From IMG/VR virus record IMGVR_UViG_3300023184_000025, positions 186,001 through 250,000 of that record: 64,000 bases of DNA; one strand, 5' to 3'. Below the pieces are notes generated by a model, which saw only the letters and a program-made list of their open reading frames with translations, was not told where the DNA came from and did not search any database. Position numbers and translations under genes: made by a program. Positions 4,641 through 29,559 of this stretch are shown here, in pieces (position 1 is the stretch's first letter; the number at the start of each line of letters is the position of its first letter).

Positions 4641-5303
4641 TTAAGGTGTGTAATTCTCAACAACACCAAGCGGAAGAGTTACGCCAATTGTACCAGACTT
4701 GATCTGACTGCCTTCGTCGGTGAAGAAGTTAACTGCATATCGATTATCACTGTAATCCAATGCAAACTTGTTTGTTAATTTTGCAATGGTTACTGACGTG
4801 CTATCTCCGTATTCTAGAGCAATGCTCATAAAACCAGAGGCTGGAGTTGCATCATCAACCAACACACAAATACCAACAAGGTATACAACACCAGTAGTTC
4901 CTAGGCCGGCGCCACTCACTGTGGCTGTAAAAACATCGCCACTTTGTGCATTTGCTGGACCACCAAGAGCTCGCCAATTGGTGTTACCAGCTGAGTTGAT
5001 GTAGTAAGTGTTACCAGCAACAATATCTTCATCTTGAATTGCTGTAGGAGCAGCCACCATGTACTTTGTGTTGCCCTTTTGACGAATAATAAATGCGCTA
5101 CGATATTGGCTGTCACCAGGGATATAAGCTGTACATTTAACAACAGGGTATGCTGCCGACGATACATCACTTGAACCGCCAACAACACCCAAGAACTGGT
5201 CACTGTTAAAAGTAGATGAGTACACAGGATCAGTCAACGCTGACCACATGTTAAAACCAATATCTTTGGTTGTTGATTTTTTAGTTTTTAGAGGACGACC
5301 CAT
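4641..5303 (-). CDS. Putative virion structural protein (MGRPL-start type)
   Basis: 220-aa ORF, strong AAGGAG RBS, late box at 5400-5405, IIRQKG motif. Confidence 0.6.
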   Translation of the reverse strand: MGRPLKTKKSTTKDIGFNMWSALTDPVYSSTFNSDQFLGVVGGSSDVSSAAYPVVKCTAYIPGDSQYRSAFIIRQKGNTKYMVAAPTAIQDEDIVAGNTYYINSAGNTNWRALGGPANAQSGDVFTATVSGAGLGTTGVVYLVGICVLVDDATPASGFMSIALEYGDSTSVTIAKLTNKFALDYSDNRYAVNFFTDEGSQIKSGTIGVTLPLGVVENYTP

Positions 5304-5399
5304 TTTGTTTTCTCCTTAAAGAAGTCCGATGCGGGTTCTAGCCGCTACGCTGTTGGGTATTAATCATCAGCATAAAACGCAGAATTGCGTTGTGTCTAA
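5304..5399 (-). promoter_or_regulatory. Structured 5' leader downstream of a late TAAATA box
   Basis: Minus-strand stems AACGCA/TGCGTT, TATGCTG/CAGCGTA, GCGG/CCGC and CTTCT/AGGAG (the last covers the RBS). Confidence 0.5.
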
Positions 5400-5407
5400 T
5401 ATTTATG

Positions 5408-6070
5408 TTAAACTTCTATTTCCCAACTCATGCTATATGTGTACACAAATATAGGTTGAGCAATTGCATTAGATTGATATTCTCTATTGGAATTATTGCT
5501 GGTTGTGCTGTGTTCGCATCTGCAGGAAAATTCGCGAGTGGTAAATGTGTCTTGGGCACCGCCGGTGACATTGGCTCCTTGAATTACATAAGTTGCATCT
5601 GGGGAGTTATAGTTCAACAAGTACGGATCCATATCCCTGTCTCCGAGATCGGTAGTGGTTAAGCCTTTATAAAAAACTCCTATTGAGTTCCATGAGTTGC
5701 TGTTTGGTTGACGATTGACTTGCCAGTGTCCTGTTACTAGAATTCTACATTGGCTGGCTGGATATGTTTGGCTGGTGTCTGGATTGGTGTATGACTGTAG
5801 AGAATTACCAATTACTGCTATAGGCCAGTTTATTCCTTTAACATGTAATATCCCTGAAGATTCAGGTTTGATCTTTTGTGCTGGTTGACCGTAGCTGAAT
5901 TCTCCCACAGCTTTATCGGGCCAACTAAGGCTAACACCAAAAGTTGCTCCGTCGTTGTATCCTTGTTCACTGAAACGCCAGCGAGCTTGATTTTCAATTG
6001 CAAGACCGTTTGATGCTGTTAGTTGGGCAGTACCTGAGTATCCCGGGGGTGTATAAAATATTTTGGCCAC
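5408..6070 (-). CDS. Hypothetical protein, probably late/virion
   Basis: 220-aa ORF, GTG start 5 nt after the TAAATA box at 6076-6081. Confidence 0.6.
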   Translation of the reverse strand: MAKIFYTPPGYSGTAQLTASNGLAIENQARWRFSEQGYNDGATFGVSLSWPDKAVGEFSYGQPAQKIKPESSGILHVKGINWPIAVIGNSLQSYTNPDTSQTYPASQCRILVTGHWQVNRQPNSNSWNSIGVFYKGLTTTDLGDRDMDPYLLNYNSPDATYVIQGANVTGGAQDTFTTREFSCRCEHSTTSNNSNREYQSNAIAQPIFVYTYSMSWEIEV

Positions 6071-7247: not shown

Positions 7248-8465
7248 TTAGGAGAATGATAGGTTTGATACAGCAATCTCGCCAACATAGTCACCAGCGT
7301 TACCGAAAGAACTTGCTGTGTTAGTAAGTTCAATGTAACCGTAACGTGTCATGAATGACACGACTGGTTCGAATGTTGATGGATCAAGCACAACACCACT
7401 GCTCATCAACGGAATGTATGGGCAGTAGAATGCGGCTGCGTCAGCTTCTGAAGAACCTTTGTAACCAACCAACACAGGTGTTGAGTCAGATGCATAAGAG
7501 TCAACGAACACACGCATTGCGCCGTTCAATGTACCAACAAACTTGGTGTTTGTAGGTGCTTAAAATGTGCCTTCTGTAGTACGAGCAAACGCACTAGTTG
7601 TAGCAGACTGAAGAACAGTCAAACTAGCTGGAGATACAACAGCCCAGTTACCAGCACCACGACGTGTGCGTTGAGCGATCAAGTTAGCAACACGGTTGAT
7701 CAGAACTGCCAATGCGGCATGCTCGTCACCAACGAATGTAGCTGTACCTGATACAGTAGCTTGGTTGTATGTGAACTCAGTAGAAGCCAGTGAGCGCAAG
7801 CTCAATAGGATCTCTTGGTCAATCTCAGCTGTAATTTCTTGTGCAAGAGCTGCCATAATTTCGGCTTCAACATCAATACCGTGCATAGCTTGTGCATCTT
7901 GAGCTGCCTCAAATGTCCAACGAGCTTGCAATTTACGTGTTTTGGCTTCAACGGCTTGTTTCAAGATCTGAACGCTGATCTGACGACCACCGTTGCCTTC
8001 AAGGGTTGATGTTGGAGCACCAGCATAACCTTGAGCGGCTGTTTGTGTTGTTGCGGCGTTATCAGCACCGCGAGCGCCTGCAGAGTATGCAACAGCAATC
8101 TTGAATGGTGATAATGCTTCTTCACCAGCAACTACAGAAGTAGCGGCTGCTGATTGGTCAGTCATTGTAGACGCATAGCGTACACGCAGAGTGTGGATTT
8201 GACCAACTGGTCCTGTCATTGGTTGTACACCAACCAACTCGTTAGCAATAACTGTTGGCATGACACGACGGATAACTGGAAGAATCACACGGTTAAGTGT
8301 GGCAATGTTACCTGCTGATGTTGAACCAGCACTTGCGTTTTCTTTCAGGTACTTACGTGTATTCTCTAGGATCACGTTCATCGAGTTGCGACGATTACCT
8401 TTTAGACCTTCGAGCAGGGCTTCTTTAGTCTCGTCCCAACGACCTTCTAATAATTCTTGTGACAT
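7248..8465 (-). CDS. gp23: Major capsid protein (T4 gp23-like), interrupted by an in-frame TAA at 7560-7562
   Basis: VGVQPMTGPVG, KTRKLQARWTFEAAQD, EITAEIDQEI and C-terminal FYCPYIPL...FMTRYG motifs; ORFs 7560-8465 and 7248-7529 are in one frame: ...TTEGTF*APTNTKFVGTLNG... (405 codons in total). Confidence 0.93.
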
Positions 8466-16662: not shown

Positions 16663-16682
16663 TATAAGTACTGATATATTTA
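16663..16682. promoter_or_regulatory. Divergent late promoter pair
   Basis: TATAAGTA (+, 16663-16670) and TAAATA (-, 16677-16682) in a 42-nt gap between divergent tail genes. Confidence 0.55.
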
Positions 16683-16694
16683 TGGTACCCAAAC

Positions 16695-17537
16695 ATGACA
16701 CAAACAGCTAACCCACTAAAGCAATACTTTAGACAACCGGCAATCTATATTAGATTGCCATCAAAAGGTAAATTCTGGAATAGTGAAGCAATTACTATTC
16801 CGCCCAATCAGGAAATTCCCATTTACCCAATGACCGCAGTTGATGAAATCACTACCAGAACACCCGATGCTTTGTTCAACGGGTCTGCCATGGTTAAGAT
16901 TTTTGAAAGTTGTTGTCCAAACATTAAAGATGCATGGCAGGTACCTAGTCTAGACGTTGATACGTTATTGGTAGCAATACGTATTGCCACTTACGGTCAT
17001 GGCATGGACATAGGTACCAAATGCCCCAGTTGTGAAAACGAAGATGAATATCAAATTGATCTTCGAGTAGTACTTGAAAATATTAATTCTCCTGACTATG
17101 ATGTTCCAGTCAAAATTGGAGACTTAGAAGTGTATTTTAAACCAATGACCTATCAGGAATTAAATTCAAATAGTCAGATTCAATTTGAAGATCAAAAACT
17201 AGTAGCAATGTTTCAGAATGCAGAAATACCCGAAGAAGAAAAACTAAAGCAGTTGGGCGAAGCATTTTTAAAAATTACCAGTCTTACAATTAGAAGCATT
17301 GCTCAGAGTATTGGCGTAATTAAAACACCAGGTGCTCAGGTCAACGAACAAGAATTTATTGTTGAGTTTTTGAACAACTGTGAAAAATCTGCGTTTGGTG
17401 CAATACGTGACCGTGCAATTCAACTCAAACAAGAAGCTGAACTAAAACCAATTAAAATTAAATGTACCAATTGTAGTAATGAGTATGATCAAAACTTTAC
17501 ATTGGATATGTCAAATTTTTTCGATTCCAACTCTTGA
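16695..17537 (+). CDS. gp26: Baseplate hub / tail assembly chaperone (gp26-like)
   Basis: YIRLPSKG, PMTAVDEI, LLVAIRIATYG, two CxxC motifs (CPSC, CTNC), ending DMSNFF. Confidence 0.8.
   Translation: MTQTANPLKQYFRQPAIYIRLPSKGKFWNSEAITIPPNQEIPIYPMTAVDEITTRTPDALFNGSAMVKIFESCCPNIKDAWQVPSLDVDTLLVAIRIATYGHGMDIGTKCPSCENEDEYQIDLRVVLENINSPDYDVPVKIGDLEVYFKPMTYQELNSNSQIQFEDQKLVAMFQNAEIPEEEKLKQLGEAFLKITSLTIRSIAQSIGVIKTPGAQVNEQEFIVEFLNNCEKSAFGAIRDRAIQLKQEAELKPIKIKCTNCSNEYDQNFTLDMSNFFDSNS
17516..17522 (+). promoter_or_regulatory. Candidate -1 ribosomal frameshift site T TTT TTC
   Basis: X XXY YYZ heptamer in the correct phase at codons 275-276 of the gp26-like gene; the -1 frame is open into ORF 17534-17752. 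Confidence 0.6.
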
Positions 17538-17752
17538 GCCTGGACTCTGACCGCGTCATCAAGCTTGTTGACCGGATGGAAAAAGAGTGTGATCAAATAC
17601 GTGAAGAGTCCATAAAGTTTGCATGGTACATGCGCGGCGGCCTGTCCTATGAGGATGCCATGTCGTTGGCACCAAACGAAAGAAAAATTATCAATAATTT
17701 GATTAAAGATAATTTAGACACTACTAAAAAATCTGGATTACCTTTCTTCTAA
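17534..17752 (+). CDS. Tail chaperone extension / gp51-like small ORF (probably the C-terminus of a frameshift fusion)
   Basis: WYMRGGLSYEDAMSLAPNER motif; weak TTG start; lies in the -1 frame overlapping the gp26-like gene end. Confidence 0.6.
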   Translation: MSLDSDRVIKLVDRMEKECDQIREESIKFAWYMRGGLSYEDAMSLAPNERKIINNLIKDNLDTTKKSGLPFF

Positions 17753-18258
17753 TGGAACTAGAACAAGTCAGACAAGATATAGAACTGTGGATTACAAACT
17801 TCTTAGAAGTTCCACATCCTGCATTAGGGGGATTTTCTCCTTGTCCTTATGCACGGTCAGCACGAGTAAAGAACAGCTATGCAGTTTATCTTGGAGCCGA
17901 TCCTTACTACGATCTTAAAAATTGTGGGCGTCAAGGCATGGGCAACCGAGAAGTTATTATCTATGTGTACGATCCAACAGAATGGTCACACGATATGCTT
18001 GCTGGTAGTATTGAATTGGTTAACAAGGAAGTACTGTTACCTAGAGACATGCTGGCACTAGAAGATCACCCAGATGATGTTGAAATGATCAATGGTGTGT
18101 GCATGAATCAAGGCACGTATGCATTAGCATTGGTACAAAGTCTAAGTGATTTAAACATCAAAGCCAAGCAAATGGCTGACAAAGGATTTTATCACAACTG
18201 GCCCGAAGACTATCTACAAGGCCTGTTTCACCACAGACAAGATCCAAGGAACCCATAA
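17752..18258 (+). CDS. DUF1415-like protein
   Basis: W...GGFSPCPYAR and LEDHPD motifs resemble the DUF1415 CPFA/FHP motifs. Confidence 0.5.
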   Translation: MELEQVRQDIELWITNFLEVPHPALGGFSPCPYARSARVKNSYAVYLGADPYYDLKNCGRQGMGNREVIIYVYDPTEWSHDMLAGSIELVNKEVLLPRDMLALEDHPDDVEMINGVCMNQGTYALALVQSLSDLNIKAKQMADKGFYHNWPEDYLQGLFHHRQDPRNP

Positions 18259-19487
18259 TGTATAGTGTACATCAACCCTGGGATCCGTTGCAAGTTTGTG
18301 TAGTGGGCAAAAGTTATCCTCCTGAGTTTTATAGCTTTATAAAAAATACACGATTACGCAGTTTGTTTGAACGTATTGCTACCGAAACCGAAGAAGACTT
18401 TGTAAATCTTGTGACATTGCTTGAAAAGTTCAATGTAAAGGTTGTAAGACCAAATGTACCCACAGTACAACTAGATCGGTTACTGACACAAAACCGACGG
18501 ATACCCGGTCCTGTTAGTATGATTCCAAGAGATCAAATGATCATGATTGGATCTGACTTTTTTGTGTTTCCATACGACAACATCAGCATAAAATCGTCCG
18601 GTCGAAGTATCATGCCTCCTAGTAATTGGACTAAAAAAAATTACAACAATTTCAAAGGGCCAGATTGGCCACAAGAATTTACTCCATTTGATCAGCTGCC
18701 AGTTTGGATACAAGAAGAATGTAAAAACTTTTTTCAGTTTGAGTTCAAGCCTGGTGACAATTCTGACGAAATTATATCCAAAGCCAGTGAGTTCGACTGG
18801 TGGGAACCAGTTACCAATCTTGTGAAGTCAGCCGGTAATCCAATAATTGAAAATCAATATCATGATATATTAAATCAAATTCCAACTAATGGAATCACCC
18901 GTATTGGAAAAGATTTATTTTTTGGGATATCTGAATCTGCCGATATCGACAAAATCAAAAAACTAACTGAACATTTTTTTCCAGACTTTAGAAATCATAT
19001 TGTGACCACTGGTGGACATATCGACGGTTGTTTTACTCCTGTTAAGCCTGGTCTTATTGTGAGTATAGAAGATATGCCTACCTATGCAGATACATTTCCT
19101 GGATGGGAAGTTGTATACCTAAGCGGAGAAGGCTGGAACAAAGTGAGATCATTTTTGGACCTTAAAGAAAAAAATCAAGGGCGTTGGTGGATCAAGGGTA
19201 GTGAATACGATGACGAACTGATTGAATATGTAGAAACATGGTTACAAGATTGGGTAGGGTATGTTGAGGAAAGTGTGTTTGATGTAAATATCCTTGTGAT
19301 CAATCAACAAAACGTGATTGTCAACAGCTACAATGAAAAAGCATTTGATGCTTTTGAACGTCACAATATAACTCCTCACATTTGCCCTTTAAGACACAGA
19401 TACTTCTGGGACGGTGGTGTACATTGTGTTACCTTGGACCTGGACCGAAAAGGTATCCAGCAAGATTTTTTTCCGGATAGAATATGA
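18258..19487 (+). CDS. Amidinotransferase (glycine/inosamine-phosphate amidinotransferase, pentein fold)
   Basis: WDPLQVCVVG, PRD, GGHIDG (His/Asp), FDVNILVI and GGVHCVTLDL (catalytic Cys). Confidence 0.88.
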   Translation: MYSVHQPWDPLQVCVVGKSYPPEFYSFIKNTRLRSLFERIATETEEDFVNLVTLLEKFNVKVVRPNVPTVQLDRLLTQNRRIPGPVSMIPRDQMIMIGSDFFVFPYDNISIKSSGRSIMPPSNWTKKNYNNFKGPDWPQEFTPFDQLPVWIQEECKNFFQFEFKPGDNSDEIISKASEFDWWEPVTNLVKSAGNPIIENQYHDILNQIPTNGITRIGKDLFFGISESADIDKIKKLTEHFFPDFRNHIVTTGGHIDGCFTPVKPGLIVSIEDMPTYADTFPGWEVVYLSGEGWNKVRSFLDLKEKNQGRWWIKGSEYDDELIEYVETWLQDWVGYVEESVFDVNILVINQQNVIVNSYNEKAFDAFERHNITPHICPLRHRYFWDGGVHCVTLDLDRKGIQQDFFPDRI

Positions 19488-19927
19488 CTTATCAATTTGC
19501 CAGAATTGACCTAGATAAAACCAATTACCTACCCACTGTTGGTTGGAATTACATCACTGATCGTGATGAAACCACACTCAACAAGCTAGATGAAATATAC
19601 AAGTACTACTGTACCTACAAACATTTTTCATCAGTAATGCCTATATTTCACAGTCGCTATCAAGATCCAATGGCTGACATCATTGGCTACTACGACAACG
19701 CTGAACTGGTTGCATTTAGCCTGATACGTAGATTTGATCAGTATAACGCACAATGTGACCAATTTGCTTGGACCTATCATCGACCCAAAATGCGCCTGGG
19801 AATTGAAACAATGAAAACAGAATGTGCTATCTATAAACAGCGTGGTTTTAAATTTTTATACTTAGAGCAAGCACATTTATACAAACAAGATATTGATGGC
19901 TTTGAGATATTAGGTCCGTTGGTGTAA
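19484..19927 (+). CDS. Arginyl/aminoacyl-tRNA-protein transferase-like protein (ATE1/Bpt C-terminal GNAT domain only)
   Basis: EIYKYYCTYKH, GYYDNAELVAFS and RLGIETMKTECAIYKQRGFKFLYL parallel the ATE_C pattern (LY..Y...H; LVAV; SLG...L.EI......Y.YL). Confidence 0.6.
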   Translation: MTYQFARIDLDKTNYLPTVGWNYITDRDETTLNKLDEIYKYYCTYKHFSSVMPIFHSRYQDPMADIIGYYDNAELVAFSLIRRFDQYNAQCDQFAWTYHRPKMRLGIETMKTECAIYKQRGFKFLYLEQAHLYKQDIDGFEILGPLV

Positions 19928-20898
19928 TGTATCAGATTAACAGCGAATGGCATAGACTAAAAACCTGTGTGGTTGGACGTAGTTGGAGTCCTGAGTTTTA
20001 TAGTTGGGTCAAAAACGTTGAGATTCGAAATTATTTTGAAACAATTGCCAGTGAAACCAATCAAGACCTAGATACACTGGCAGTTAATCTGAATGCCTTT
20101 GGAGTACACACGCTTAGGCCAACAGCAGATGTTGTTGATGTTGATGTTAACAATCTACCAAAAGCGCCGTTGGCTCCTAGAGATCATTTGTTGATGCTGG
20201 GGAATAAACTTGTTAAATCATTTTACAATAACACAAATCCAGATTTTTATAAAAACATTTCAGATCATGTGATTGATCAGGGTAATCAAGAAATAGAAGT
20301 TAATCTGCCATCAGTGTGTGGTGCCACTGTTTATCAATTGACCGATCGCGTATTTTTTTCTAATAATAAATCAGCTCATGAGTTTTTACACAATAAAATC
20401 AACAATAAAAAACTAACAGCTTTTCATCAGGAAGGACACATAGATGGATGGTTTTGTCCAGTAACGCCAGGATTGATTATAGCCAATGATGATCCGGTAA
20501 ATCATGAACTGCTAGAATTATTTTTTAAAATGTATTTCAATAACTGGGAAATAGTTTATATCAGACCTAGCTTAGAAAAATTACCATCATTTAAAAATTG
20601 GCAAGCAAGGCATACTGGATCTTGGTGGTTGCCAGGGCAAGAAAGCAATATCAAACTTATTGAGTTTGTTGATTGTTACTTTAAAAATTCGTTGGGTTAT
20701 GTAGCAGAAACTGTGTTTGAATTAAACATGTTGATCATTGACGATAAAAATGCAGTGATCAGTGGCTACAATCAACAAATATTTGATGCACTCAAAAGGC
20801 ATCAAGTTACTCCGCATGTTTCACAATTTAGACACAAGTGTTTTTGGGACAATGGTCTACATTGTGTAACTAGCGATCTTCACAGAGAGAAAATATAA
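19927..20898 (+). CDS. Second amidinotransferase paralogue
   Basis: WHRLKTCVVG, PRD, EGHIDG, FELNMLII and NGLHCVTSDL. Confidence 0.87.
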   Translation: MYQINSEWHRLKTCVVGRSWSPEFYSWVKNVEIRNYFETIASETNQDLDTLAVNLNAFGVHTLRPTADVVDVDVNNLPKAPLAPRDHLLMLGNKLVKSFYNNTNPDFYKNISDHVIDQGNQEIEVNLPSVCGATVYQLTDRVFFSNNKSAHEFLHNKINNKKLTAFHQEGHIDGWFCPVTPGLIIANDDPVNHELLELFFKMYFNNWEIVYIRPSLEKLPSFKNWQARHTGSWWLPGQESNIKLIEFVDCYFKNSLGYVAETVFELNMLIIDDKNAVISGYNQQIFDALKRHQVTPHVSQFRHKCFWDNGLHCVTSDLHREKI

Positions 20899-20899
20899 A

Positions 20900-21235
20900 A
20901 TGGATTTGTATACAATTTGGGCAGATAAAGAAGGCGACATCTCAGACCTAGACTGGGTCAACGGAATGAAGAGTTTTTTTGATCATTTGATTACAGAAGG
21001 TAAAATGGAGAGCTATAGAATTACTCGTTGTAAAATGGGATTCCGTAGTATTGCCGATATGCCAGAATGGATGATACTTATGGAGTTCCGAGACATGGGA
21101 CAAATGGACAATGCTTTCAAACGAGTAGCACCACTCAAAGGAGAACTCGAAGAGAAACATAGAAGTTTTAATCAGTTTGTTAGTGGCACTATTCAACACG
21201 CATTGTTTAGAGATTGGCCAGATACTAACTTATAA
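20900..21235 (+). CDS. DUF6614-like dimeric alpha/beta barrel protein
   Basis: YTIWAD...HLITEGKMESYRITRCKMG...EWMILMEFRDMGQMDNAF pattern. Confidence 0.55.
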   Translation: MDLYTIWADKEGDISDLDWVNGMKSFFDHLITEGKMESYRITRCKMGFRSIADMPEWMILMEFRDMGQMDNAFKRVAPLKGELEEKHRSFNQFVSGTIQHALFRDWPDTNL

Positions 21236-21245
21236 CGGCTTTATG

Positions 21246-21318
21246 AGAACTTCGTTGAAGTTCTATTGATTTCGCTATCGCTCATCAATATTATTATAAA
21301 CATCGAACGAAGTGAGAT
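21246..21318. other. Cluster of three hairpins (terminator- or ssDNA-signal-like)
   Basis: AGAACTTC/GAAGTTCT (21246-21264), TATTGAT/ATCAATA (21264-21290), ATC-GA-AC-GAA-GT-GA-GAT (21302-21318). Confidence 0.5.
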
Positions 21319-21324
21319 TACAGT

Positions 21325-21687
21325 TATTATCCAGATTCTTTGGTCACACTTTGCCCGCACAGGGCAAAGATTGAAAGCATTATCCGAGTTCGAATAGCCA
21401 CATAGCGTTACAACATTACAGAGGCGGTTGTCCGGTACCTCGAGTTGTGTCTTTATACAACGGCAATTAATATAATATACGCTAACATACTATATTAACC
21501 TGCTACATCACTGTAGCGTCTTTTTAGCCTTTAAATTCTTTTCAAACAATCAAACCGCGGCAATTAGCGATCGTCGTCCTGTCAAGGATAGTGATTGAGT
21601 GCTTGCTAGAGCGGCAAGACTTCCGTCCCTGCGATCCGAGATCCAGGTCTAGGGCACATGAAATTGACCTGTGCAAGTCGTAACTAC
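21325..21687 (-). ncRNA. Putative large structured non-coding RNA, family unassigned (3' boundary uncertain)
   Basis: No ORF of 60 aa or more in 21236-21687; about ten stems; G-U pairs and a GUGA tetraloop favour the minus strand; possible pseudoknot and long-range closing helix. Confidence 0.65.
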
Positions 21688-22178: not shown

Positions 22179-23756
22179 TTAGTGGAAATCTAATAAGGTT
22201 TCTAAGTTTTCAAAATCCTGAGTATTGATGACATTCTTGTCAAGGTTTTGTAAAATATTATATAAAATTTGTAACTCTTCTCTGTTACGAGTCTGTGGCC
22301 ATCCTAGTTTTACACTTACTTCGTGTAATTCTAATCGACGACGTATGCGTTCTTTTAGTGTTAGTGTTGGGTTCAATTCATTTACCCATCCAAATCCTAG
22401 TGCAATGTCACGAAGACCCTGTGGTAGATTGTGAAACCGTTTGGCAAAGTCTGGATCAGTGATTAGTTTTACTTTTGAATCACCGGCTAGCTTGCCTTCT
22501 TCTCGGAACATACCGGTGTACCCCCAACGTACCATGTGAATCACTCCTGCTCGAGCATATTTTTGATACCGGTGTAAAAACTCAATGTTGTAGTTGTGAT
22601 CTTCCAATGTCTCAACAGGATACCCAACAAACATTAAACAAACATTTTTAATTCCATAGTATGCAGACTGTGCAAAATGGAAATCAATATCTGCATTGCT
22701 ATGATTTTTACCCATGTGTTTTCTAACATGTGGACTGTAAGATTCAAATCCAGTGACCAGCATATTACAACCGGCCTTGGCCATTAACTCCCAGTCTTTT
22801 TCAGTTTGATCAAATCTTGTTCTACAAATAAACTGTCCAAGATATTTTATTGGTTCTAAACTTGCATCTTGTTTTTTAGCCTCTACCAATTGACGATTTA
22901 CTTCTCTCCACATTTTCATATTACCGTTGATTAGACTGTCGGTAAAGTGAAAGAGATTAACATTATATTTTTTCTTTCCGTTGATAATTTCTTTTACAAT
23001 ATCATCGGCACTACGAGAAGTATATGTTGGCCACATGTCAGAAATACTACAAAATTTACAATTCCTAACACACCCTCTTGATGCAGTGATATAAATTCCT
23101 GGCTCAGATGTGTAATAGTAATTTGATGGGTCAATGCCTTCATATTCAGGATGCGGCAGCTTGTCTAATTTACGAATTTGAACTGCTGGGTTTCCGTTAA
23201 CTCCGTTAGAATTATCGTTACCATTTAATAATTCAATGATGGCCTGTTCACCTTCTCCTTGGATATAGTAATCAACCAATCCGGTCTTTAGTGCATAGTC
23301 AGCAAACGTTGTAGAATCCAATGCCAGCGGGTTCTCGGTTAAATTTGGCAAACTTCCTGGCCAAGCATAGCTACCTGCTCCGCCTATGACAATTTTACAG
23401 TTTAATTGATCTCGTACCTTCTGCAACATCACACTGGCAGGAATAACACTAAATCTAGTAAACACAGAAATCCCAACCATGTCAGGATTAAACTTGTCTA
23501 CAGTTGTTAAAAATTGATCAATTGTATCATTTAATATTTGTTGAGTTGCAGGTTCTAGTGTATATTTTTTGCAACGCCAGTATTGTTCAAGTTCAACCCA
23601 CACATCTGTGCTTACATTGCTGTGTAAAAACAAATTAAAATCATACACGTTACATTCCCAACCAGCACTACGTACACAAGCACTTATGGCCGCGGCGGCG
23701 GCTGGTGGTCTTTCTAACTCTTGACTTGGTACGTTGATGAATGCAAATCGTTTCAT
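22179..23756 (-). CDS. B12-binding radical SAM protein (class B methyltransferase-like)
   Basis: N-terminal cobalamin-binding Rossmann domain (KIVIGG, GEGEQAI); SRGCVRNCKFC CxxxCxxC; GFES; FVGYPVET. Confidence 0.88.
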   Translation of the reverse strand: MKRFAFINVPSQELERPPAAAAAISACVRSAGWECNVYDFNLFLHSNVSTDVWVELEQYWRCKKYTLEPATQQILNDTIDQFLTTVDKFNPDMVGISVFTRFSVIPASVMLQKVRDQLNCKIVIGGAGSYAWPGSLPNLTENPLALDSTTFADYALKTGLVDYYIQGEGEQAIIELLNGNDNSNGVNGNPAVQIRKLDKLPHPEYEGIDPSNYYYTSEPGIYITASRGCVRNCKFCSISDMWPTYTSRSADDIVKEIINGKKKYNVNLFHFTDSLINGNMKMWREVNRQLVEAKKQDASLEPIKYLGQFICRTRFDQTEKDWELMAKAGCNMLVTGFESYSPHVRKHMGKNHSNADIDFHFAQSAYYGIKNVCLMFVGYPVETLEDHNYNIEFLHRYQKYARAGVIHMVRWGYTGMFREEGKLAGDSKVKLITDPDFAKRFHNLPQGLRDIALGFGWVNELNPTLTLKERIRRRLELHEVSVKLGWPQTRNREELQILYNILQNLDKNVINTQDFENLETLLDFH

Positions 23757-24296: not shown

Positions 24297-26060
24297 TTAT
24301 TCTAGCTCTGTGTCATTGTTGTAGGATGTAAATCCGTTTTCTTTTACAACACGTAAAATATTCTCTACACGACCAGCAAGCTCATCTCTGTGACTTACTA
24401 ACCAAATACTTTTATGACGTTCTCTACTCATCTTTTTAAGTAGTGCAAGACTGTTTTCAACACCCTGGGTATCCATACCTGAATCAACAAGTTCGTCAAT
24501 GAATAATACATTGATTGGATGATATAAACTTTCCCAAACGTCTCGGAATGCCCACGACATGGACAATATAAGTCGATTGCGCTCACCACGCGACAAATTA
24601 TCAAAGTCTAGATCACGACCCAGTTCGGTAATCTCAACACTGAGATCATTTTGAAATACAACCTGATGCGGCAATCCAATTTTATCTAGATAGTGTGTGA
24701 GTCGAGCATTTAAATAACTTAAATTTTGCTCAATAATCTTTTTACGAATAAAACTATCTTTTGAAGTCAACAACTTCAACAAGAAGTCTTGATGTTCTTG
24801 CATTCTAGTTAGATCATTTAATCCAACATAGTCAACAACCTGCAATGCTTGTTCTTGCATGTCGGTAATTTGTTCAGCATACGGATCTTGTTCTTGTTGC
24901 TTGCTATCAATCTGTGTTTGTAGGTTGGCCAATGTAGCACGATGATGAATAGCATCTTCTTCGTTGTCATAGAACATGGTCGGAGGTTTGCCAACTGCGC
25001 CAATGTCATTTAACTCGTTTTGAATTTCACTAACTTCGGTAGTTTGCTCGGTGCATCGTGTTCTTGCATCAGCTAAGTCAGTGCGTTTATTAGTCAACAC
25101 TTGCTCGTGTTTCTCATCATGAAATGCCTGTCCGCAGGTGTGACAGGTATGTGCTTCTAATGATACAATCTCATCAGACAATTTTTTAATTGTTTTTTCT
25201 TCGCGTTGAACTTCTAGTTTTGCTCGACTTAACTTAGACTGTAAGTCGTTGAATGTTTTTCTTCTGTTATCCCAGGCAGTATGTTCACGATGTGCAGTAA
25301 TTTCTGCATCGATGTCAATCTCTTGTAGTGCTTCCAATGCCGTTTGTAGTTTAGTAAGTTCTTCAGCTCGCTTGGTAATCCACAATGTTTGTCTACGCTT
25401 CAAACTGTCAATTTGTTCTTCAATCCTTTTGTTTGCTTCTTGAACTGCACGTATTCTAAACTCTTCCTGACTGATAGAGTCCTTGGTTTCTCTGTTTAAT
25501 TCTTTAATGCGTTCAGCCTTTTCACTCAGCAACGTTATTCCCAACAACTGTTCAATCAAGGTTCGCTGATCGTTGGCTTTGAGACTTAAAAAAGGTTCAG
25601 TATAAGTGTTAAGTGCTAGAATATGTCTAAACATATCGTGACTCATACCAAGTATGTGTTCAATGGCATCCTGTGTTTCTCTGCTGTCTCCTTGACTGTC
25701 GTCGGTGATTTCTTGTTCTTGGCTGTTTACATAAAACTTCAATACGTTGGGTTTTCGTCCGCGCTCAATTCGATAATCTTTACCACTCACTTCAAAATCT
25801 AAACTAACCAACATATTTTTGCCATTGGTCTTGTTTACAAGATTGTCTTTGCGAATATTAGTTAATGCTTGCCCATATAGAGAATAGCTGAGAGCATTGA
25901 TAATAGTAGTTTTGCCTGTGCCATTACGACTGCCGTCACCACCTAGATCAAGATTCTCACCTAGCACAAGTGTAAGATCTTTACGATCAAAATCAACATC
26001 CTGAGTAGAATTACCCACGCTCATAAAGTTTTTAACAGTCAAAGTTTTAATATTAATCAC
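24297..26060 (-). CDS. gp46: Recombination ATPase gp46 (Rad50/SbcC-like)
   Basis: Walker A NGTGKTT, zinc hook CHTC, signature LSRGE, Walker B FIDE, H-loop VSH. Confidence 0.95.
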   Translation of the reverse strand: MINIKTLTVKNFMSVGNSTQDVDFDRKDLTLVLGENLDLGGDGSRNGTGKTTIINALSYSLYGQALTNIRKDNLVNKTNGKNMLVSLDFEVSGKDYRIERGRKPNVLKFYVNSQEQEITDDSQGDSRETQDAIEHILGMSHDMFRHILALNTYTEPFLSLKANDQRTLIEQLLGITLLSEKAERIKELNRETKDSISQEEFRIRAVQEANKRIEEQIDSLKRRQTLWITKRAEELTKLQTALEALQEIDIDAEITAHREHTAWDNRRKTFNDLQSKLSRAKLEVQREEKTIKKLSDEIVSLEAHTCHTCGQAFHDEKHEQVLTNKRTDLADARTRCTEQTTEVSEIQNELNDIGAVGKPPTMFYDNEEDAIHHRATLANLQTQIDSKQQEQDPYAEQITDMQEQALQVVDYVGLNDLTRMQEHQDFLLKLLTSKDSFIRKKIIEQNLSYLNARLTHYLDKIGLPHQVVFQNDLSVEITELGRDLDFDNLSRGERNRLILSMSWAFRDVWESLYHPINVLFIDELVDSGMDTQGVENSLALLKKMSRERHKSIWLVSHRDELAGRVENILRVVKENGFTSYNNDTELE

Positions 26061-26130: not shown

Positions 26131-27084
26131 TTATTTGACTTCAAGTTTAAAGTTGTCAATGCCCTGGTGAATCCTTGTTTGTTCACCGCGCATAAATCTA
26201 GCAACCTTCTCGGCATTTAAATCCTCAACGGTACTATACAATAAAAAAGAACGAGCAGTTTTTACCTTGCTACTGGTGTTATAAACCTTAATTAAATCCT
26301 GTTGAATGGTATTAATCCTTGACTGTGATATCGACCGGTCAATAAAAAACCCAACCCATGCGGTGTGATTACCAACTACATCCTTACCAGTTAGCTCTTT
26401 TAGTGTTGGTAAGTTTGGATAATCGGAATTTCTTTTATTTGACAACACAGCATGGTATTTAATTTTACCACCTTTTTCAAGTTCTTTTGTTGATCCAAAT
26501 GTGGCAAAAGAAAATGTTAATGTTTGGGTAGATACATCAACAAACCAATTTCCGTATTGTACATATGGTGCATGAATAGATTTACTGCCAACGCTAGTTA
26601 CAAGTTCCATGCCTGCAATTTGTGGCGGAGAACCAATGCTCCAACTTCCAAATGTTGGATTTTGTTTAATTGCGGATTGTAGATCAGCAAATGTTTCGTA
26701 TTTTGGAGAACTAAACAATACTAACTCGCTTAGTCCGTCAAATGATAATGGAAATAACTGATCGACCACAGCAGTATTTTTACTCAGATGTGGAAAAGAA
26801 AGATAGTTGTCAATTGGTAATAGTGCAATACTGTTTTCTTTATCATGGAAGTGTGCATTAGCGGCCACAATACCGTTGCCACCTGGTCGGTTGTCAACCA
26901 GGACTGAAGTTTTCCAAAGAGCTGACAATTCTTCAGCATATTCTCTAACAACCTTGTCTGGACCTGATCCTGCTGGCACAGCCACAATAATCTTAAAGGG
27001 TGCCCGTGGAGGATCGTTTTGAGCATGTGCAGAGTTAAATACTAATCCAATGGATAAAAGAATAGTTCCTAATATGTTTTTCAT
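26131..27084 (-). CDS. Tripartite tricarboxylate transporter substrate-binding protein (TctC/Bug family)
   Basis: Signal peptide ending SAHA; KIIVAVPAGSGPD, VLVDNRPGGNG, HAPY and PNLPTLKE motifs. Confidence 0.85.
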   Translation of the reverse strand: MKNILGTILLSIGLVFNSAHAQNDPPRAPFKIIVAVPAGSGPDKVVREYAEELSALWKTSVLVDNRPGGNGIVAANAHFHDKENSIALLPIDNYLSFPHLSKNTAVVDQLFPLSFDGLSELVLFSSPKYETFADLQSAIKQNPTFGSWSIGSPPQIAGMELVTSVGSKSIHAPYVQYGNWFVDVSTQTLTFSFATFGSTKELEKGGKIKYHAVLSNKRNSDYPNLPTLKELTGKDVVGNHTAWVGFFIDRSISQSRINTIQQDLIKVYNTSSKVKTARSFLLYSTVEDLNAEKVARFMRGEQTRIHQGIDNFKLEVK

Positions 27085-28541
27085 TTTTTTAAATTCCTAA
27101 AATAATTTCGTAACACCGACATATTAACTTTAAATCCGCTATAATTATCTTTGTGCAATTTAGCATAGTTGTTAAACTGTAAATGTCGAAACTTCTGTCT
27201 CATTGTTAAATTTAGTTTTTCAAATTCAACATCGCCGCTCCAGACAGCAAGATACAATTTTTGATTTGATGCATCAACGCAAATATCAAAGTCTCCATCA
27301 CAATAAGGAACAACAGTTTCATGTAGTTCAGGGATTGTAAAATATATTTCGTTGATTCTAAATAAATTTTCTCGACCCTTGTGTATGTAACCTGTGATGT
27401 TATCTCCAATTAGCGTATCTTCGACAACTATATCTTTGATATCAATTGACTTAGCAGTGACAGAAATCCTATTCTCTACACTGGAGATTGTAAAAAAATC
27501 TCCATCTGTCGGTGGATACCAATCAGGGCGATAGTTGGAAAGATCTTGATCTTTTTTAATGTGCTTGACAAATAACGGCCCAAATGTTTCGTTAGTTCCA
27601 AATAAACTTACAATATTTTGAATGTTTGTTTTGTTGGCCAGTGTAATATACTCAGGCTTTACGTGAAACCCTCCCACAATAAAATCAACATTGTGATCAA
27701 ACTGAATATTTTTATTAGTCATAGATAATAAAATTTCATCCAATAGTCCTTTGTATGACAATGCAATTTTGCTAATTTTTTCTTGTCTAACCAGATCAAT
27801 AAACTCATCAATATTATCCCATCTTCCTAAAGGAAAGCTATAATGCTTTGATGATCCTATCATTGCTGGAAGAAAATGAGTCAATAAAATAAAAGAATGA
27901 TGTAGGTTTCTAGTATGACAAACAGAATTGTTACGATACTCCATTACATCAATATTTCGAACAGAAATGCGATAAAGTTGTTTATGCGTATACTTTAATA
28001 TTTTTGGTTCGCCTGTGGTACCGCTAGTAGTTGTTTGAACAAGAACAGAATCGGGCGTGGCAAGAATGTTTGTTGACAGGTGCTTGTATAATTCGTGATC
28101 TTTAATTTTGTAATCAAAAAATATCTTTTCGTTTAGAATTTTTTTACAGTAACGCTTGCCCATTGCAACTATTTTTGGTTGCTCCATATTGATATCATCA
28201 AATATCGCAAGATCAAATAACCCAGACTCTTTAGTCATAACTTCAAGATGTTCAACATATCCAGTGTTGTTGTATGCTTTTTCTGGAGGTGTTATCATTT
28301 CTATTCCAAGTTCTGCAGCCGCAAAAAAAAGACTAGAATATAAGAACCCCACAGTTGAATCATAGATGCACATTGTATTTCCGGAACGCAATCCATAACC
28401 TTCATATAAAACAATTTTCCAAAAATTAATAGCATCATTGAACTTATTAAAGTCATAACTTGTTAATTCTTTAGAATGCAATTCTGCAAATTGGATATTG
28501 GGGTGAATAAAACTTCTGGTAATTAAATCGATATGGTTCAT
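27081..28541 (-). CDS. AMP-binding (ANL superfamily) adenylation-like enzyme
   Basis: A3 loop TTTSGTTGEPK, FGTNETFG, HKGRENLFRIN. Confidence 0.75.
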   Translation of the reverse strand: MNHIDLITRSFIHPNIQFAELHSKELTSYDFNKFNDAINFWKIVLYEGYGLRSGNTMCIYDSTVGFLYSSLFFAAAELGIEMITPPEKAYNNTGYVEHLEVMTKESGLFDLAIFDDINMEQPKIVAMGKRYCKKILNEKIFFDYKIKDHELYKHLSTNILATPDSVLVQTTTSGTTGEPKILKYTHKQLYRISVRNIDVMEYRNNSVCHTRNLHHSFILLTHFLPAMIGSSKHYSFPLGRWDNIDEFIDLVRQEKISKIALSYKGLLDEILLSMTNKNIQFDHNVDFIVGGFHVKPEYITLANKTNIQNIVSLFGTNETFGPLFVKHIKKDQDLSNYRPDWYPPTDGDFFTISSVENRISVTAKSIDIKDIVVEDTLIGDNITGYIHKGRENLFRINEIYFTIPELHETVVPYCDGDFDICVDASNQKLYLAVWSGDVEFEKLNLTMRQKFRHLQFNNYAKLHKDNYSGFKVNMSVLRNYFRNLKK

Positions 28542-28542
28542 A

Positions 28543-29559
28543 TTAAAGACTCTGGTAAATGTTCAGCAGTAACTTGGAATCGTAAAATTCAGATTCAATG
28601 TCAGTGATCTGCTGTGTGACAATTTGATCAACACTTTCAAACTTAATTTCACCAGGCGCAAGGTCCAGAGTTAAATCTTGATTTTTAACTGAGATTAGGC
28701 CAATTTCTCTAATGGCATGTTTTTGCATGAACGTTTCTTTGATGAAGTTAGCTTCTTCGTAGCTGATATCAATGTCAAGCTGAATACGCACATGCATGTT
28801 ATCACCAAGCAAGGTGTTATTTTCATCCAGCAGTTCACTGAGTTTGTAAACACGATACCTTGGTTGATTACTCCATGCATGATATTCTACAGGTTTGCCC
28901 CATTCTAAAATAGCACATCCACGTTTGTCATCGCCTGCATCGGCAAAATTATGTGGGAAACAGTTGCCGATGTAATTGATGTTTTGTCTTTTTTGTCTTA
29001 GGTGAAAATGACCGCTGTATACTTCTTCAACACCTGTAAAGTGTTCTGCCTGTAGTTCGCCATGATCAGGCATCTCTACCATGGCATTCATTTTAAAATG
29101 TGGTAATTCAAAATGTCCGAAAACATATTTAGCTGACAGTTTTGAAATGCGCTTGTGATCGTCTCCCACCAACCACGGAGCAATAACTACATCGCCTTGC
29201 TTGAACCAATCGTTGACAATCTGTATGTTGGGTAGATGCTTGGCCCATTCAGCGCCGTGAATGTCTCGCTTGTCTCTGTAGTATAGGTCGTGATTGCCTG
29301 GAATAAAATAAAACTGATCAAATGCTTTGGATAGTTTTTCCAACGCTCGTAGACTAAAGTTTAGGGTCTGTAGATTAATACTGGCTCTGTGATGATGCCA
29401 ATCTCCAAGGAACATGCCAGTTTCACAACCTTGTTCCTTGGCTTTGGCAATAAACCAGTCAATAAAATTTTCACAGTCTTGGTTGTGAGCCAGACTATTT
29501 GACTTTAGTCCAAAATGAATATCAGTACAAATAGCCGTTTTACGAAATAGATTAGTCAT
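28543..29559 (-). CDS. gp47: Recombination endonuclease gp47 (Mre11/SbcD-like)
   Basis: Phosphoesterase motifs TDIHFG, LGDWHH, GNHD, GHFE and SGHFH. Confidence 0.95.
   Translation of the reverse strand: MTNLFRKTAICTDIHFGLKSNSLAHNQDCENFIDWFIAKAKEQGCETGMFLGDWHHHRASINLQTLNFSLRALEKLSKAFDQFYFIPGNHDLYYRDKRDIHGAEWAKHLPNIQIVNDWFKQGDVVIAPWLVGDDHKRISKLSAKYVFGHFELPHFKMNAMVEMPDHGELQAEHFTGVEEVYSGHFHLRQKRQNINYIGNCFPHNFADAGDDKRGCAILEWGKPVEYHAWSNQPRYRVYKLSELLDENNTLLGDNMHVRIQLDIDISYEEANFIKETFMQKHAIREIGLISVKNQDLTLDLAPGEIKFESVDQIVTQQITDIESEFYDSKLLLNIYQSL

Follow-up and report, generated by a model that had tools for sequence, protein, structure and literature searches.

A 64,000-nucleotide stretch of a lake phage (IMG/VR record IMGVR_UViG_3300023184_000025), hereafter referred to as the window, carries five tightly packed genes, p168, p409, p147, p323 and p111, that follow a gp26-like baseplate-hub gene and a 72-aa gene (s72) and end at a hairpin (Table 1). 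Read directly, the gene junctions are TAATG (s72/p168, p168/p409 and p147/p323), ATGA (p409/p147) and TAA-A-ATG (p323/p111); the gp26-like gene and s72 are also overlapped. An earlier note, made from the sequence alone, had described a translationally coupled operon of two amidinotransferases flanking a tRNA-dependent transferase, with DUF1415-like and DUF6614-like genes; that observation is real, with the open reading frames lying exactly as described and both DUF assignments upheld.

Table 1 Features of the cassette and its flanks, in window coordinates.
Feature	Position	Strand	Description
Promoter-like motifs	16663..16685	.	Back-to-back T4-late-promoter-like motifs in the 42-nt divergent intergenic region; TATAAGTA on + (16663-16670); TATATTTATGG (16675-16685) reads CCATAAATATA on the - strand; function inferred
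gp26-like	16695..17537	+	Baseplate hub gene, first gene of the transcription unit (context)
s72	17534..17752	+	Conserved 72-aa protein of unknown function, TTG start; overlaps both neighbors
p168	17752..18258	+	DUF6875/DUF1415-fold protein (predicted); probable small thiolate-haem (cytochrome P422-like) oxygenase
p409	18258..19487	+	Amidinotransferase homologue of the 408-412 aa subfamily; optional
p147	19484..19927	+	Stand-alone ATE_C-type GNAT domain; probable aminoacyl-tRNA-dependent transferase with a likely basic (Arg/Lys) donor
p323	19927..20898	+	Second amidinotransferase homologue, of the short 323-338 aa subfamily; optional
p111	20900..21235	+	DUF6614 protein with a predicted Dabb/EthD-like alpha+beta barrel
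Hairpin	21246..21264	+	Terminator-like, 8-bp stem, 11 nt after the p111 stop codon; likely end of the transcription unit

The first gene of the unit matches the T4_baseplate family (PF12322, E=1.7e-15) and phrog_150 (baseplate hub), while s72 returned no family match but is conserved at 40–66% identity in related loci. The late promoter invoked in the earlier note is only a 7/8 match, and the exact TATAAATA is not present here. The element is conserved, however; ATATTTA is present upstream of the gp26-like gene in 62 of 64 related loci, and TATAAGT in 22 of 64. The hairpin rests on a consensus scan only, and such sites are not enriched over shuffles.

Both penteins are true amidinotransferase homologues. 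Searches against solved structures matched p409 to AGAT (E=6e-11), HsvA, SxtG and StrB1, and p323 to StrB1 (E=3e-5); the family profile matched AGAT at E=9e-18. Homology to these enzymes is full-length, though too low for any Pfam or NCBIfam model to fire. The PRD, GH.DG and C-terminal HC motifs are conserved family-wide, retaining the catalytic Cys and His and both guanidinium-binding Asp residues (D92, H254, D256 and C390 in p409; HC and H-x-D in p323), but the column of the AGAT triad Asp254 is occupied by Asn or another residue. The two proteins are 34–37% identical (BLASTP E=4e-43) and belong to deeply diverged subfamilies: the p409 clade (100/100), all members of which occupy the slot upstream of p147, and the p323 clade (100/99); p323 lacks an ~85-aa insert found in p409 and occupies the downstream slot.

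The p147 protein is a single GNAT domain corresponding to only the C-terminal domain of Bpt (Asp/Glu leucyltransferase) and eukaryotic ATE1 arginyltransferase. Its family profile matched yeast ATE1 at E=2.8e-7, and longer homologues pass the Pfam ATE_C threshold. The AF2 model (pLDDT 94) returned Bpt for all of the top 30 Swiss-Prot model hits (TM 0.70–0.77), over Bpt residues ~60–230 only; hits in the PDB include MprF, FemX, ATE1 and Sba18. The signature motifs F.W.Y..P...LG, Y.YLG and YK are shared, and W96, E113, Y133 and K134 correspond to klAte1 W260, E277, Y303 and the catalytic K304; these residues are identical whether or not amidinotransferase genes are present. Conservation of the Arg-pocket Glu277, which is Gln in Bpt, strengthens the arginine theme of the earlier note. 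Relative to Bpt and ATE1 (~235–500 aa), the 147-aa viral protein lacks ATE_N and thus the Cys4 metal site and the acidic-N-terminus pocket (R80, Y25 and Y87 in ATE1).

For p168, the DUF6875 Pfam hit is sub-threshold (16.3 bits), although 27 of 32 family members hit that model. The AF2 model (pLDDT 93.5) matched DUF6875 and DUF1415 proteins in AFDB (TM 0.55–0.78, probability 1.00), with no fold match in the PDB. The DUF6875 fold was recently shown to comprise thiolate-haem cytochrome P422 tryptophan oxygenases (bioRxiv 10.64898/2025.12.11.692455). The predicted alpha/beta fold, with about 6–7 helices and a 4-stranded sheet, is the same in p168, as are an invariant Cys-Pro at the equivalent N-terminal loop and an M..G.[YF] motif on the last strand; P30-C31-P32, D105-H106-P107 and E111 are invariant. 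However, p168 is smaller and lacks both the Arg of the P422 RxGxVCP motif and the Trp-clamp motifs SBR1 and SBR2. It is probably a sister family (DUF1415-like) with another substrate, for which haem binding is only inferred. The p111 protein matches PF20319 (E=1e-21, 77.6 bits), and the structural neighbors of its cluster are DUF1330, Dabb, EthD and HapK. It is the most conserved protein of the cassette, at 75–95% identity in relatives where p168 is 41–74%, and 90% in L140 where p168 is 35% (L numbers denote individual loci).

We next queried how the gene set is distributed. The core cassette recurs in about 300 IMG/VR stretches, and each core protein has more than 2600 protein clusters at 90% identity. 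The order gp26-like, s72, p168, p147, p111 is found in nearly all of 80 IMG/VR loci, with a p168–p147 gap of 0–3 nt in the relatives. The obligate unit is p168 with p147, usually closed by p111; the amidinotransferases are optional inserts absent from about 60% of relatives, so the core chemistry does not need amidino transfer. The p168-like, p147-like and amidinotransferase genes also recur together in at least four unrelated phage contexts, including L111 (nrdB, MazG, glutaredoxin), L118 (divergent orientation, fatty-acid desaturase), L129, and L143/144 (dCMP deaminase, methyltransferase, phosphoribosyltransferase). Pairs without an amidinotransferase occur in L121 (nrdA–nrdB), L140 and L109.

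These distributions bear on whether the genes share a pathway at all. That they are unrelated passengers, accumulating in a hyperplastic region between the hub genes and a homing-endonuclease gene, finds some support: a SegE-like GIY-YIG gene lies next door, metagenome contigs from the same lakes skip p409, and on the p147 tree the presence of amidinotransferase genes needs 21 changes among 69 loci (24 with the genes), as many as in five sampled label shuffles (18–22). We consider this very unlikely, as the same three protein families are adjacent in at least five different arrangements and neighborhoods, including opposite orientations, the core is fixed in hundreds of loci with overlapping reading frames, and the 27–49% identities between contexts argue against one recently transferred block. 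A shared pathway is therefore well supported, and we hold it with high confidence.

The recurrent placement beside RNR, MazG, glutaredoxin, dCMP deaminase and a phosphoribosyltransferase raises the possibility that the module decorates phage DNA or a nucleotide precursor with an aminoacyl or guanidino group to evade host restriction. Amidinotransferase homologues are also present in Campylobacter phages, some of which carry modified guanine. This reading is improbable; no hydroxymethylase, DpdA-like transglycosylase, kinase or glycosyltransferase typical of known DNA hypermodification pathways was seen next to the module in any locus, no ATE/Bpt-type enzyme is known to act on nucleic acid, and the neighbors are also just the usual auxiliary-metabolism block of marine and freshwater phages.

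Taken together, a model of one portable enzyme module emerges, which has not been described in the papers that could be searched. The comparative data establish the obligate, translationally coupled p168–p147 pair, the two optional amidinotransferase subfamilies each with its own slot, and the DUF6614 protein that usually closes the cassette; the mechanism that follows, including every activity, cofactor and product, is inferred from sequence and predicted structure. In this view, p168 would bind haem through its invariant Cys and, like cytochrome P422 enzymes, oxygenate or N-hydroxylate the acceptor or, alternatively, hold the acceptor for p147. Using Lys134, with Glu113 binding the side chain, p147 would then ligate a basic aminoacyl group, most likely Arg and possibly Lys, from aminoacyl-tRNA to an amine or hydroxylamine of the acceptor. 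Where present, p409 and p323 would use free L-arginine and a Cys-amidino intermediate to convert remaining free amino groups into guanidino groups, furnishing a strongly basic, guanidino-rich adduct. We regard these activities as only somewhat more likely than not.

Our best guess for the acceptor, and with it the model as a whole, is tentative: a small amine such as a polyamine or an amino-acid-like metabolite, rather than a virion protein. AGAT, StrB1, HsvA and SxtG, the four solved amidinotransferases matched here, all act on small amines, and the characterized P422s act on free Trp or a small thiol analogue. Optional tailoring genes and mostly metabolic neighbors are typical of metabolite pathways. 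GNAT-fold relatives such as Sba18/Sbb17 of streptothricin-type antibiotics, FemX and MprF transfer aminoacyl groups from tRNA to non-protein acceptors (an amine, lipid or hydroxylamine), and in valanimycin biosynthesis an N-hydroxylase acts just before the tRNA-dependent transferase VlmA. Those enzymes, however, have two GNAT lobes and belong to other sequence families; none is known to be viral or to occur with amidinotransferases or a P422-like partner. Also against this model, the nearest characterized relatives of p147, Bpt and ATE1, modify protein N-termini, not metabolites, and no ferredoxin or reductase partner was seen in the window.

Given the absence of ATE_N, we also considered that p168 is not an oxygenase but replaces that domain, completing the acceptor cleft of p147 and rendering transfer haem-, O2- or redox-dependent, with the amidinotransferases and DUF6614 as later additions. 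The ATE1 active site lies between ATE_N and the GNAT domain, ATE_N carries a Cys4 metal site, and ATE1 is regulated by hemin (PMC9351520); moreover, p147 is always paired and translationally coupled with p168, and in L118 the two genes stay adjacent even in convergent orientation. This split arginyltransferase with a haem sensor is nonetheless unlikely: p168 has no sequence or fold similarity to ATE_N, its relatives are stand-alone oxygenases or are fused to TDO or ATP-grasp enzymes, and p168-like genes also occur without p147, next to 2OG oxygenases or next to an amidinotransferase alone.

The interpretation in the earlier note is partly supported. Two outcomes that it had named as potentially refuting, a p147 without the ATE/GNAT fold and a lack of co-occurrence elsewhere, were examined and came out in its favor, as did the arginine theme. 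On the other hand, the two amidinotransferases are accessory, and the DUF1415-like protein is not a bystander but the obligate partner of p147, adding a putative oxygenase step that the note did not foresee. Its inference that late co-expression with tail genes points to virion modification is weak, because in other phage lineages the module sits beside RNR, MazG, glutaredoxin, dCMP deaminase, a phosphoribosyltransferase or a fatty-acid desaturase, not tail genes.

Protein modification remains possible, if unlikely, as the main rival: the module would arginylate or lysylate, and optionally amidinate, N-termini or side chains of phage virion or host proteins as a viral counterpart of Bpt/ATE1, with p168 oxidizing the target residue first, as Cys oxidation precedes arginylation in the eukaryotic Arg/N-degron pathway. 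The similarity of p147 to Bpt and ATE1 favors it, as do the window's lineage, in which the cassette is co-oriented and overlapped with the gp26-like hub gene behind the conserved late-promoter-like motif, and the position of p168-like genes just upstream of baseplate wedge genes in S-SCSM2R. Against it, the ATE_N pocket for acidic N-termini is absent, no amidinotransferase is known to act on proteins, and the neighbors in other lineages belong to nucleotide metabolism. The only relative with experimental data, ORF266 (“glycine amidinotransferase”) of the T4-like Synechococcus phage S-SCSM2R, is 31–35% identical to p323/p409 (E down to 5e-35) and was detected, together with a 2OG oxygenase, in CsCl-purified virions (PMC12801897), which favors a protein or virion target; as its authors say, however, this detection may reflect abundance or carry-over. 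A tblastn search found no p147 relative in any phage record. In S-SCSM2R, ORF266 sits among KdsA/B and 2OG-Fe(II) oxygenase genes, while the p168-like gene lies elsewhere in the genome, just upstream of baseplate wedge genes.

The window matches the 345-kb IMG/VR contig IMGVR_UViG_3300023184_000025 at 100% identity and is present in public runs from lake and freshwater metagenomes; its surroundings are T4-like, with a Gp23 capsid protein, an S77 prohead protease and the Gp20 portal. The Gp23 major-capsid match sits in a 300-aa ORF and covers only positions 1-271 of the 376-position profile; the capsid gene may be split, or this may be a shorter paralogue. A 1162-aa protein is encoded on the minus strand and is followed, divergently, by a gp26-like baseplate-hub gene (PF12322 E=1.7e-15; phrog_150), a 72-aa gene (s72) and the five cassette genes, named here by the lengths of their products. 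Direct reading of the cassette junctions identified three TAATG overlaps, one ATGA overlap and one 1-nt gap, and a terminator-like hairpin follows the last gene. The observation in the earlier note, a run of five translationally coupled genes with two amidinotransferases flanking a putative tRNA-dependent transferase, was correct in every particular that we could check. A megablast search of the locus against phage records returned no match, no tRNA genes were found in the window, and NCBIfam and PADLOC searches returned no hits for any of the five proteins.

Coordinates of the cassette, its surroundings and related features in other loci
Record	Coordinates	Strand	Feature
Window	7560-8465	-	300-aa ORF with the Gp23 major-capsid match
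Window	16663-16670	+	TATAAGTA, late-promoter-like element in the 42-nt divergent intergenic region
Window		-	CCATAAATATA, late-promoter-like element in the same intergenic region
Window	16695-17537		gp26-like baseplate-hub gene
Window			s72, 72-aa gene
Window	17752-18258		p168, DUF6875/DUF1415-like
Window	18258-19487		p409, amidinotransferase homologue
Window	19484-19927		p147, stand-alone ATE_C-type domain
Window	19927-20898		p323, amidinotransferase homologue
Window	20900-21235		p111, DUF6614
Window	21246-21264		Terminator-like hairpin
Window	21544-21679	-	Match to Rfam Polynucleobacter-1 RNA
Locus L142	7767-7901		Match to Rfam Polynucleobacter-1 RNA
Locus L054	7084-7229		Match to Rfam Polynucleobacter-1 RNA
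Window	22179-23756	-	B12-binding radical SAM enzyme
Loci L005/L006	9697-11923 and 15398-16444		Relatives carrying radical SAM/SPASM genes
Window	24297-26060		gp46-like gene
Window	26131-28541	-	TctC-like periplasmic binding protein gene and AMP-binding enzyme gene
Window	28543-29559	-	ORF that by position would be gp47
Window	41815-56097	+	4760-aa ORF
Locus L113 (phage S-SCSM2R)	3198-4468		p168-like gene near a 2OG-Fe(II) oxygenase gene
Locus L114 (Roseobacter phage CRP-810)	3435-4543		p168-like gene beside a 2OG-Fe(II) oxygenase gene
Locus L124 (NZ_KB235948.1)	4834-5489		Adjacent s72-like and p168-like genes

The two penteins were queried against solved amidinotransferases. p409 matched AGAT at E=6e-11 and also HsvA, SxtG and StrB1, while p323 matched the same set more weakly (StrB1 E=3e-5). 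A profile built from 18 family members matched AGAT at 9e-18 and StrB1 at 1e-16, over nearly the full length, and HsvA at 3e-16 and SxtG at 1e-13. In AGAT the catalytic residues are Cys407 and His303, and the guanidinium is bound by Asp170 and Asp305; the corresponding C390, H254, D92 (in the PRD motif) and D256 (in GH.DG) are invariant or at least 90% conserved in the family and align to the AGAT HID and HC motifs. For the third residue of the AGAT triad, Asp254, the profile alignment places AGAT F-D254-A-A-D against an I-N-x-A column of the family, that is, against Asn or another residue, with a register in p409 (PTNG) and p323 (CGA) that is uncertain without a structure. No Pfam or NCBIfam model reached its cut-off, the best being arginine deiminase (PF02274) at E=0.005 in two distant relatives; this is a remote branch. 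The two paralogues are only 34-37% identical and fall on a tree in separate, well-supported clades, each tied to a slot; the 408-412-aa type is always upstream of p147, and the 323-338-aa type is downstream. They are not a recent duplication and probably do different jobs. Amidinotransferase-like genes occur as multiple paralogues in other uncultured phages as well: the single-cell-derived Marine virus AG-345-D19 has three copies (loci L001-L003), locus L106 has a tandem pair, and the copy in L003 and a 488-aa copy in locus L107 have lost the catalytic Cys.

The 147-aa protein has 2976 homologue clusters at 90% identity. An exhaustive phmmer search linked it, at E 1e-20 to 4e-4, to proteins of 225-268 aa that pass the Pfam ATE_C gathering threshold, although p147 itself received no Pfam hit, and a family profile matched yeast ATE1 structures at E=2.8e-7. 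The AlphaFold model (pLDDT 94) is a single GNAT domain. In the PDB, it resembles both acetyltransferases and the aminoacyl-tRNA users MprF, FemX, ATE1 and Sba18; among Swiss-Prot models, the top 30 hits are all Bpt, with TM 0.70-0.77, and they cover only Bpt residues ~60-230. Residues studied in Kluyveromyces lactis Ate1 (PMC9351520) were mapped onto p147 through the profile alignment. The tRNA-binding Trp260 and Tyr303 correspond to W96 and Y133, the catalytic Lys304 (FemX K305) corresponds to K134, and Glu277, which binds the Arg side chain and is replaced by Gln189 in the Leu-specific Bpt, corresponds to E113. Across 80 homologues, the counts are W 80/80, Y 80/80, K 79/80 and E 79/80, whether or not amidinotransferase genes are present. 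The other pocket positions are T/S109 (Ser273), L125 (Tyr289; Leu in Bpt) and C91 (Ser255); the pocket is therefore mixed but keeps the charge, from which a basic donor is inferred. No ATE_N hit was found in p147 or in its longer homologues; in Ate1, that domain carries the Cys4 metal site and the acidic-N-terminus acceptor pocket (R80, Y25, Y87). The inference is therefore that p147 would work like an ATE-type transferase, probably with a basic donor, as a stand-alone catalytic domain rather than as a complete family member, and its acceptor cannot be inferred.

For the 168-aa protein, a weak DUF6875 hit (PF21780, 16.3 bits against a cut-off of 24.5) recurred in 27 of 32 family members, all below threshold; one more distant homologue, P0377, carries PF21780. 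The predicted structure (pLDDT 93.5) has no counterpart in the released PDB, and PDB sequence searches with the p168 profile and with P0377 found nothing, in a copy that apparently lacks entry 9X39. In the AFDB, the model matched DUF6875 and DUF1415 proteins with probability 1.00 and TM 0.55-0.78, including DUF6875 proteins and a tryptophan-dioxygenase (TDO)-DUF6875 fusion at E 2e-5 to 3e-4 and TM 0.55-0.58, and DUF1415 proteins at TM 0.56; a neighbouring Atlas cluster agreed. A December 2025 preprint renames DUF6875 ‘cytochrome P422’ and describes thiolate-ligated b-haem oxygenases with a novel fold, an axial Cys in an RxGxVCP motif, and N- or C-hydroxylation of tryptophan. The absence of a PDB match is consistent with the fold being described as unique. 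In the p168 family, P-C31-P is invariant within GG[WF]xPCP[YF]AR; Cys-Pro is kept, the Gly is shifted by one, the Arg at -5 is absent, and R35 and R38 after the Cys are conserved. An Asp-His-Pro is also invariant. Of the tryptophan-binding motifs SBR1 Rx(M/L)x3Dx2F, SBR2 Dx2(Q/H)x3K and SBR3 MxGxF, only an SBR3-like M118-N-Q-G121-T-Y123 is present, and SBR1 and SBR2 are not recognisable; a different substrate is expected. We read p168 as a member of a sister family and, by inference only, as probably a small haem-thiolate oxygenase. Two other identities were considered. A thioredoxin or glutaredoxin was suggested by the CP[YF]A motif and a DHP ‘cis-Pro’ loop, but was rejected because a Foldseek search of the PDB gave nothing (best TM 0.33) and the AFDB hits are DUF6875/DUF1415 proteins; a Cys-His-Asp hydrolase, considered because of the TDO fusions, was dropped in light of the P422 preprint. 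In cultured phages, p168-like genes sit beside a 2OG-Fe(II) oxygenase gene, directly after it in CRP-810 and one small ORF away in S-SCSM2R, which is a second recurrent pairing of the fold with an oxygenase.

The last protein, p111, is a clear DUF6614 member (PF20319, 77.6 bits against a cut-off of 25, covering 1-109 of 111 aa) with Dabb/EthD-like structural neighbours. Among homologues in loci L005-L142, it is far more conserved than its neighbours, being 75-95% identical where p147 is 59-82%, p168 41-74% and the gp26-like protein 41-58% identical, and 90% identical in locus L140, where p168 is only 35% identical. A preprint reports anti-Druantia type I activity for a DUF6614-annotated phage gene.

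The strongest result is the co-occurrence of these genes. Among 80 IMG/VR loci found with p147, essentially all carry gp26-like, s72, p168, p147 and p111 in that order, with a p168-p147 gap of 0-3 nt. A split, haem-regulated arginyltransferase formed by this pair remains conceivable, but we consider it unlikely. The amidinotransferases are optional. Close relatives on NCBI metagenome contigs lack them too, and contigs from the same lakes skip p409. When their presence was mapped onto the p147 tree, 21 changes were needed, as many as in five sampled label shuffles (18-22); as the quick tree of a 147-aa protein is poorly resolved, we read this distribution only as patchy.

Amidinotransferase genes in 79 distinct loci pooled from the p147- and p409-seeded scans; eight of those loci lack p111 or end too soon to score it
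Amidinotransferase genes	Loci
None	47
Upstream slot only	15
Downstream slot only	4 (one, L070, has a 676-nt gap with no amidinotransferase hit)
Both slots	3

Beyond this lineage, the families recur together in different arrangements. Locus L111 carries nrdB, p168-like, p147-like, amidinotransferase, MazG and glutaredoxin genes; L121 carries nrdA, nrdB, p168-like and p147-like genes; and L118 carries an amidinotransferase on the minus strand, a 235-aa ATE_C protein on the plus strand and a p168-like gene on the minus strand, near a fatty-acid desaturase. L129 has p168-like, p147-like and amidinotransferase genes, L126 has p168-like and amidinotransferase genes, and L140 has p168-like, p147-like and DUF6614 genes in a non-structural setting. 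In L142, both extra genes are downstream of p147; its 348-aa gene after DUF6614 sits on a very long branch and is not an amidinotransferase. L143/144 carry dCMP deaminase, methyltransferase-like, p168-like (PF21780) and p147-like genes, two small ORFs, an amidinotransferase and a PRTase. Modification of DNA or a nucleotide is, in our view, an improbable reading. Identities between these contexts are 27-49%, so the block was not transferred recently. A shared function for p168, p147 and the amidinotransferases is hard to avoid, and mere co-location is very unlikely.

Some of these loci hint at hosts. L122 and L123 carry the core cassette on large contigs (148 and 183 kb) binned into a ‘Haliscomenobacter sp.’ MAG, and L129 carries its triad on a short contig in another, uncultured Bacteroidetes bin; these are either mis-binned phage contigs or a hint that the hosts are freshwater Bacteroidota. 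The chromosome of a cultured cyanobacterium, Oscillatoria sp. PCC 10802 (locus L124), carries adjacent s72-like (36%) and p168-like (53% identity) genes without p147, which may be a phage-derived fragment and a host hint.

With respect to regulation, the earlier note had invoked a late promoter. The two elements in the divergent intergenic region, TATAAGTA and CCATAAATATA, are 7/8 matches to the T4 late promoter, and no exact copy lies here. The element is nonetheless conserved across relatives, with ATATTTA in 62/64 loci, many with a perfect TATAAATA on the minus strand. With no intergenic space inside the cassette, late co-transcription with the hub gene is plausible but unproven; the one metatranscriptome run examined holds only three short contigs, all on the gp26-like gene, and is uninformative in this regard.

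Taken together, we favor a tailoring module. In this model, p168 would oxygenate or hold an amine acceptor, p147 would ligate a basic aminoacyl group from aminoacyl-tRNA, and the optional amidinotransferases would convert free amino groups to guanidino groups at the expense of free arginine. The homologies, the conserved residues, the gene order and its recurrence are direct results of the analysis, and the folds rest on predicted structures, whereas haem binding and oxygenation by p168, aminoacyl transfer and donor choice by p147, Arg-dependent amidino transfer by p409 and p323, and the product itself are inferred. We lean, tentatively, to a small-molecule acceptor for three reasons: characterised amidinotransferases and P422 enzymes act on small molecules, the amidinotransferases behave as optional tailoring genes, and most neighbourhoods are metabolic. 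Modification of proteins is somewhat less likely but keeps real support, in that the nearest relatives of p147 modify protein N-termini, with ATE/Bpt enzymes transferring an amino acid from aminoacyl-tRNA to N-terminal Asp/Glu, the cassette rides in a hub operon in hundreds of phages, and an amidinotransferase homologue was found in purified virions of S-SCSM2R. The interpretation in the earlier note, an undescribed phage pathway for guanidino or arginyl groups with virion modification as the preferred outcome, is supported only in part. A far-reaching form of the protein reading, which we consider unlikely, is that phages encode their own tRNA-dependent protein arginylation system, in which a minimal ATE domain working with a haem-thiolate partner adds Arg to virion or host proteins, and optional amidinotransferases then turn protein amino groups into guanidino groups. 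Both would be modifications unknown in viruses, and protein amidination is unknown anywhere; such a system would alter tail or baseplate function or redirect host N-degron proteolysis, and would be of a categorically new kind.

The component superfamilies are known, as are tRNA-dependent tailoring cassettes; what differs here is the combination, in viruses, of a stand-alone ATE_C domain obligately paired with a protein of predicted P422 fold, together with slot-specific amidinotransferases and DUF6614. Full-text searches of the accessible literature on amidinotransferases in phages, arginyltransferases in bacteriophages, DUF1415, DUF6614, and aminoacyl-tRNA together with amidinotransferases found no description of this module, and tblastn found p147 and p111 in no record of the phage collection searched. 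Yet the core proteins each have more than 2600 clusters at 90% identity in public metagenomes, and about 300 IMG/VR loci carry the cassette in lake and marine T4-like phages. If the inferred activities hold, these would be the first viral ATE/Bpt-type transferases and would show that the catalytic domain can work without ATE_N; it would be the first viral use of the newly recognised P422 haem fold, and a new setting for amidinotransferases. Whatever the product is, be it a guanidino metabolite, a DNA counter-ion, a modified protein or modified DNA, the 3.5-kb cassette is a widespread and unrecognised piece of phage chemistry, small enough to be amenable to heterologous expression.

A full-length, high-scoring match to the Rfam ‘Polynucleobacter-1’ RNA (120 bits against a gathering score of 37, E=1e-26) lies, in the window and in L142, immediately 3' of the SegE-like GIY-YIG homing-endonuclease gene. 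It is present in only 2 of 12 relatives scanned, and it may travel with the endonuclease or may hint at a Polynucleobacter-type freshwater host. A B12-binding radical SAM enzyme, with its best match to RiPP and P-methyltransferase-type models, lies beside the cassette, and relatives carry two or three radical SAM/SPASM genes around the gp46/gp47 recombination nuclease genes. A TctC-like periplasmic binding protein gene and an AMP-binding (adenylate-forming) enzyme gene lie between the gp46-like gene and the next minus-strand ORF, which by position alone would be gp47; this insertion is unusual for a T4-like replication and recombination block. Further along, a single ORF of 4760 aa occupies part of the baseplate and fibre region.
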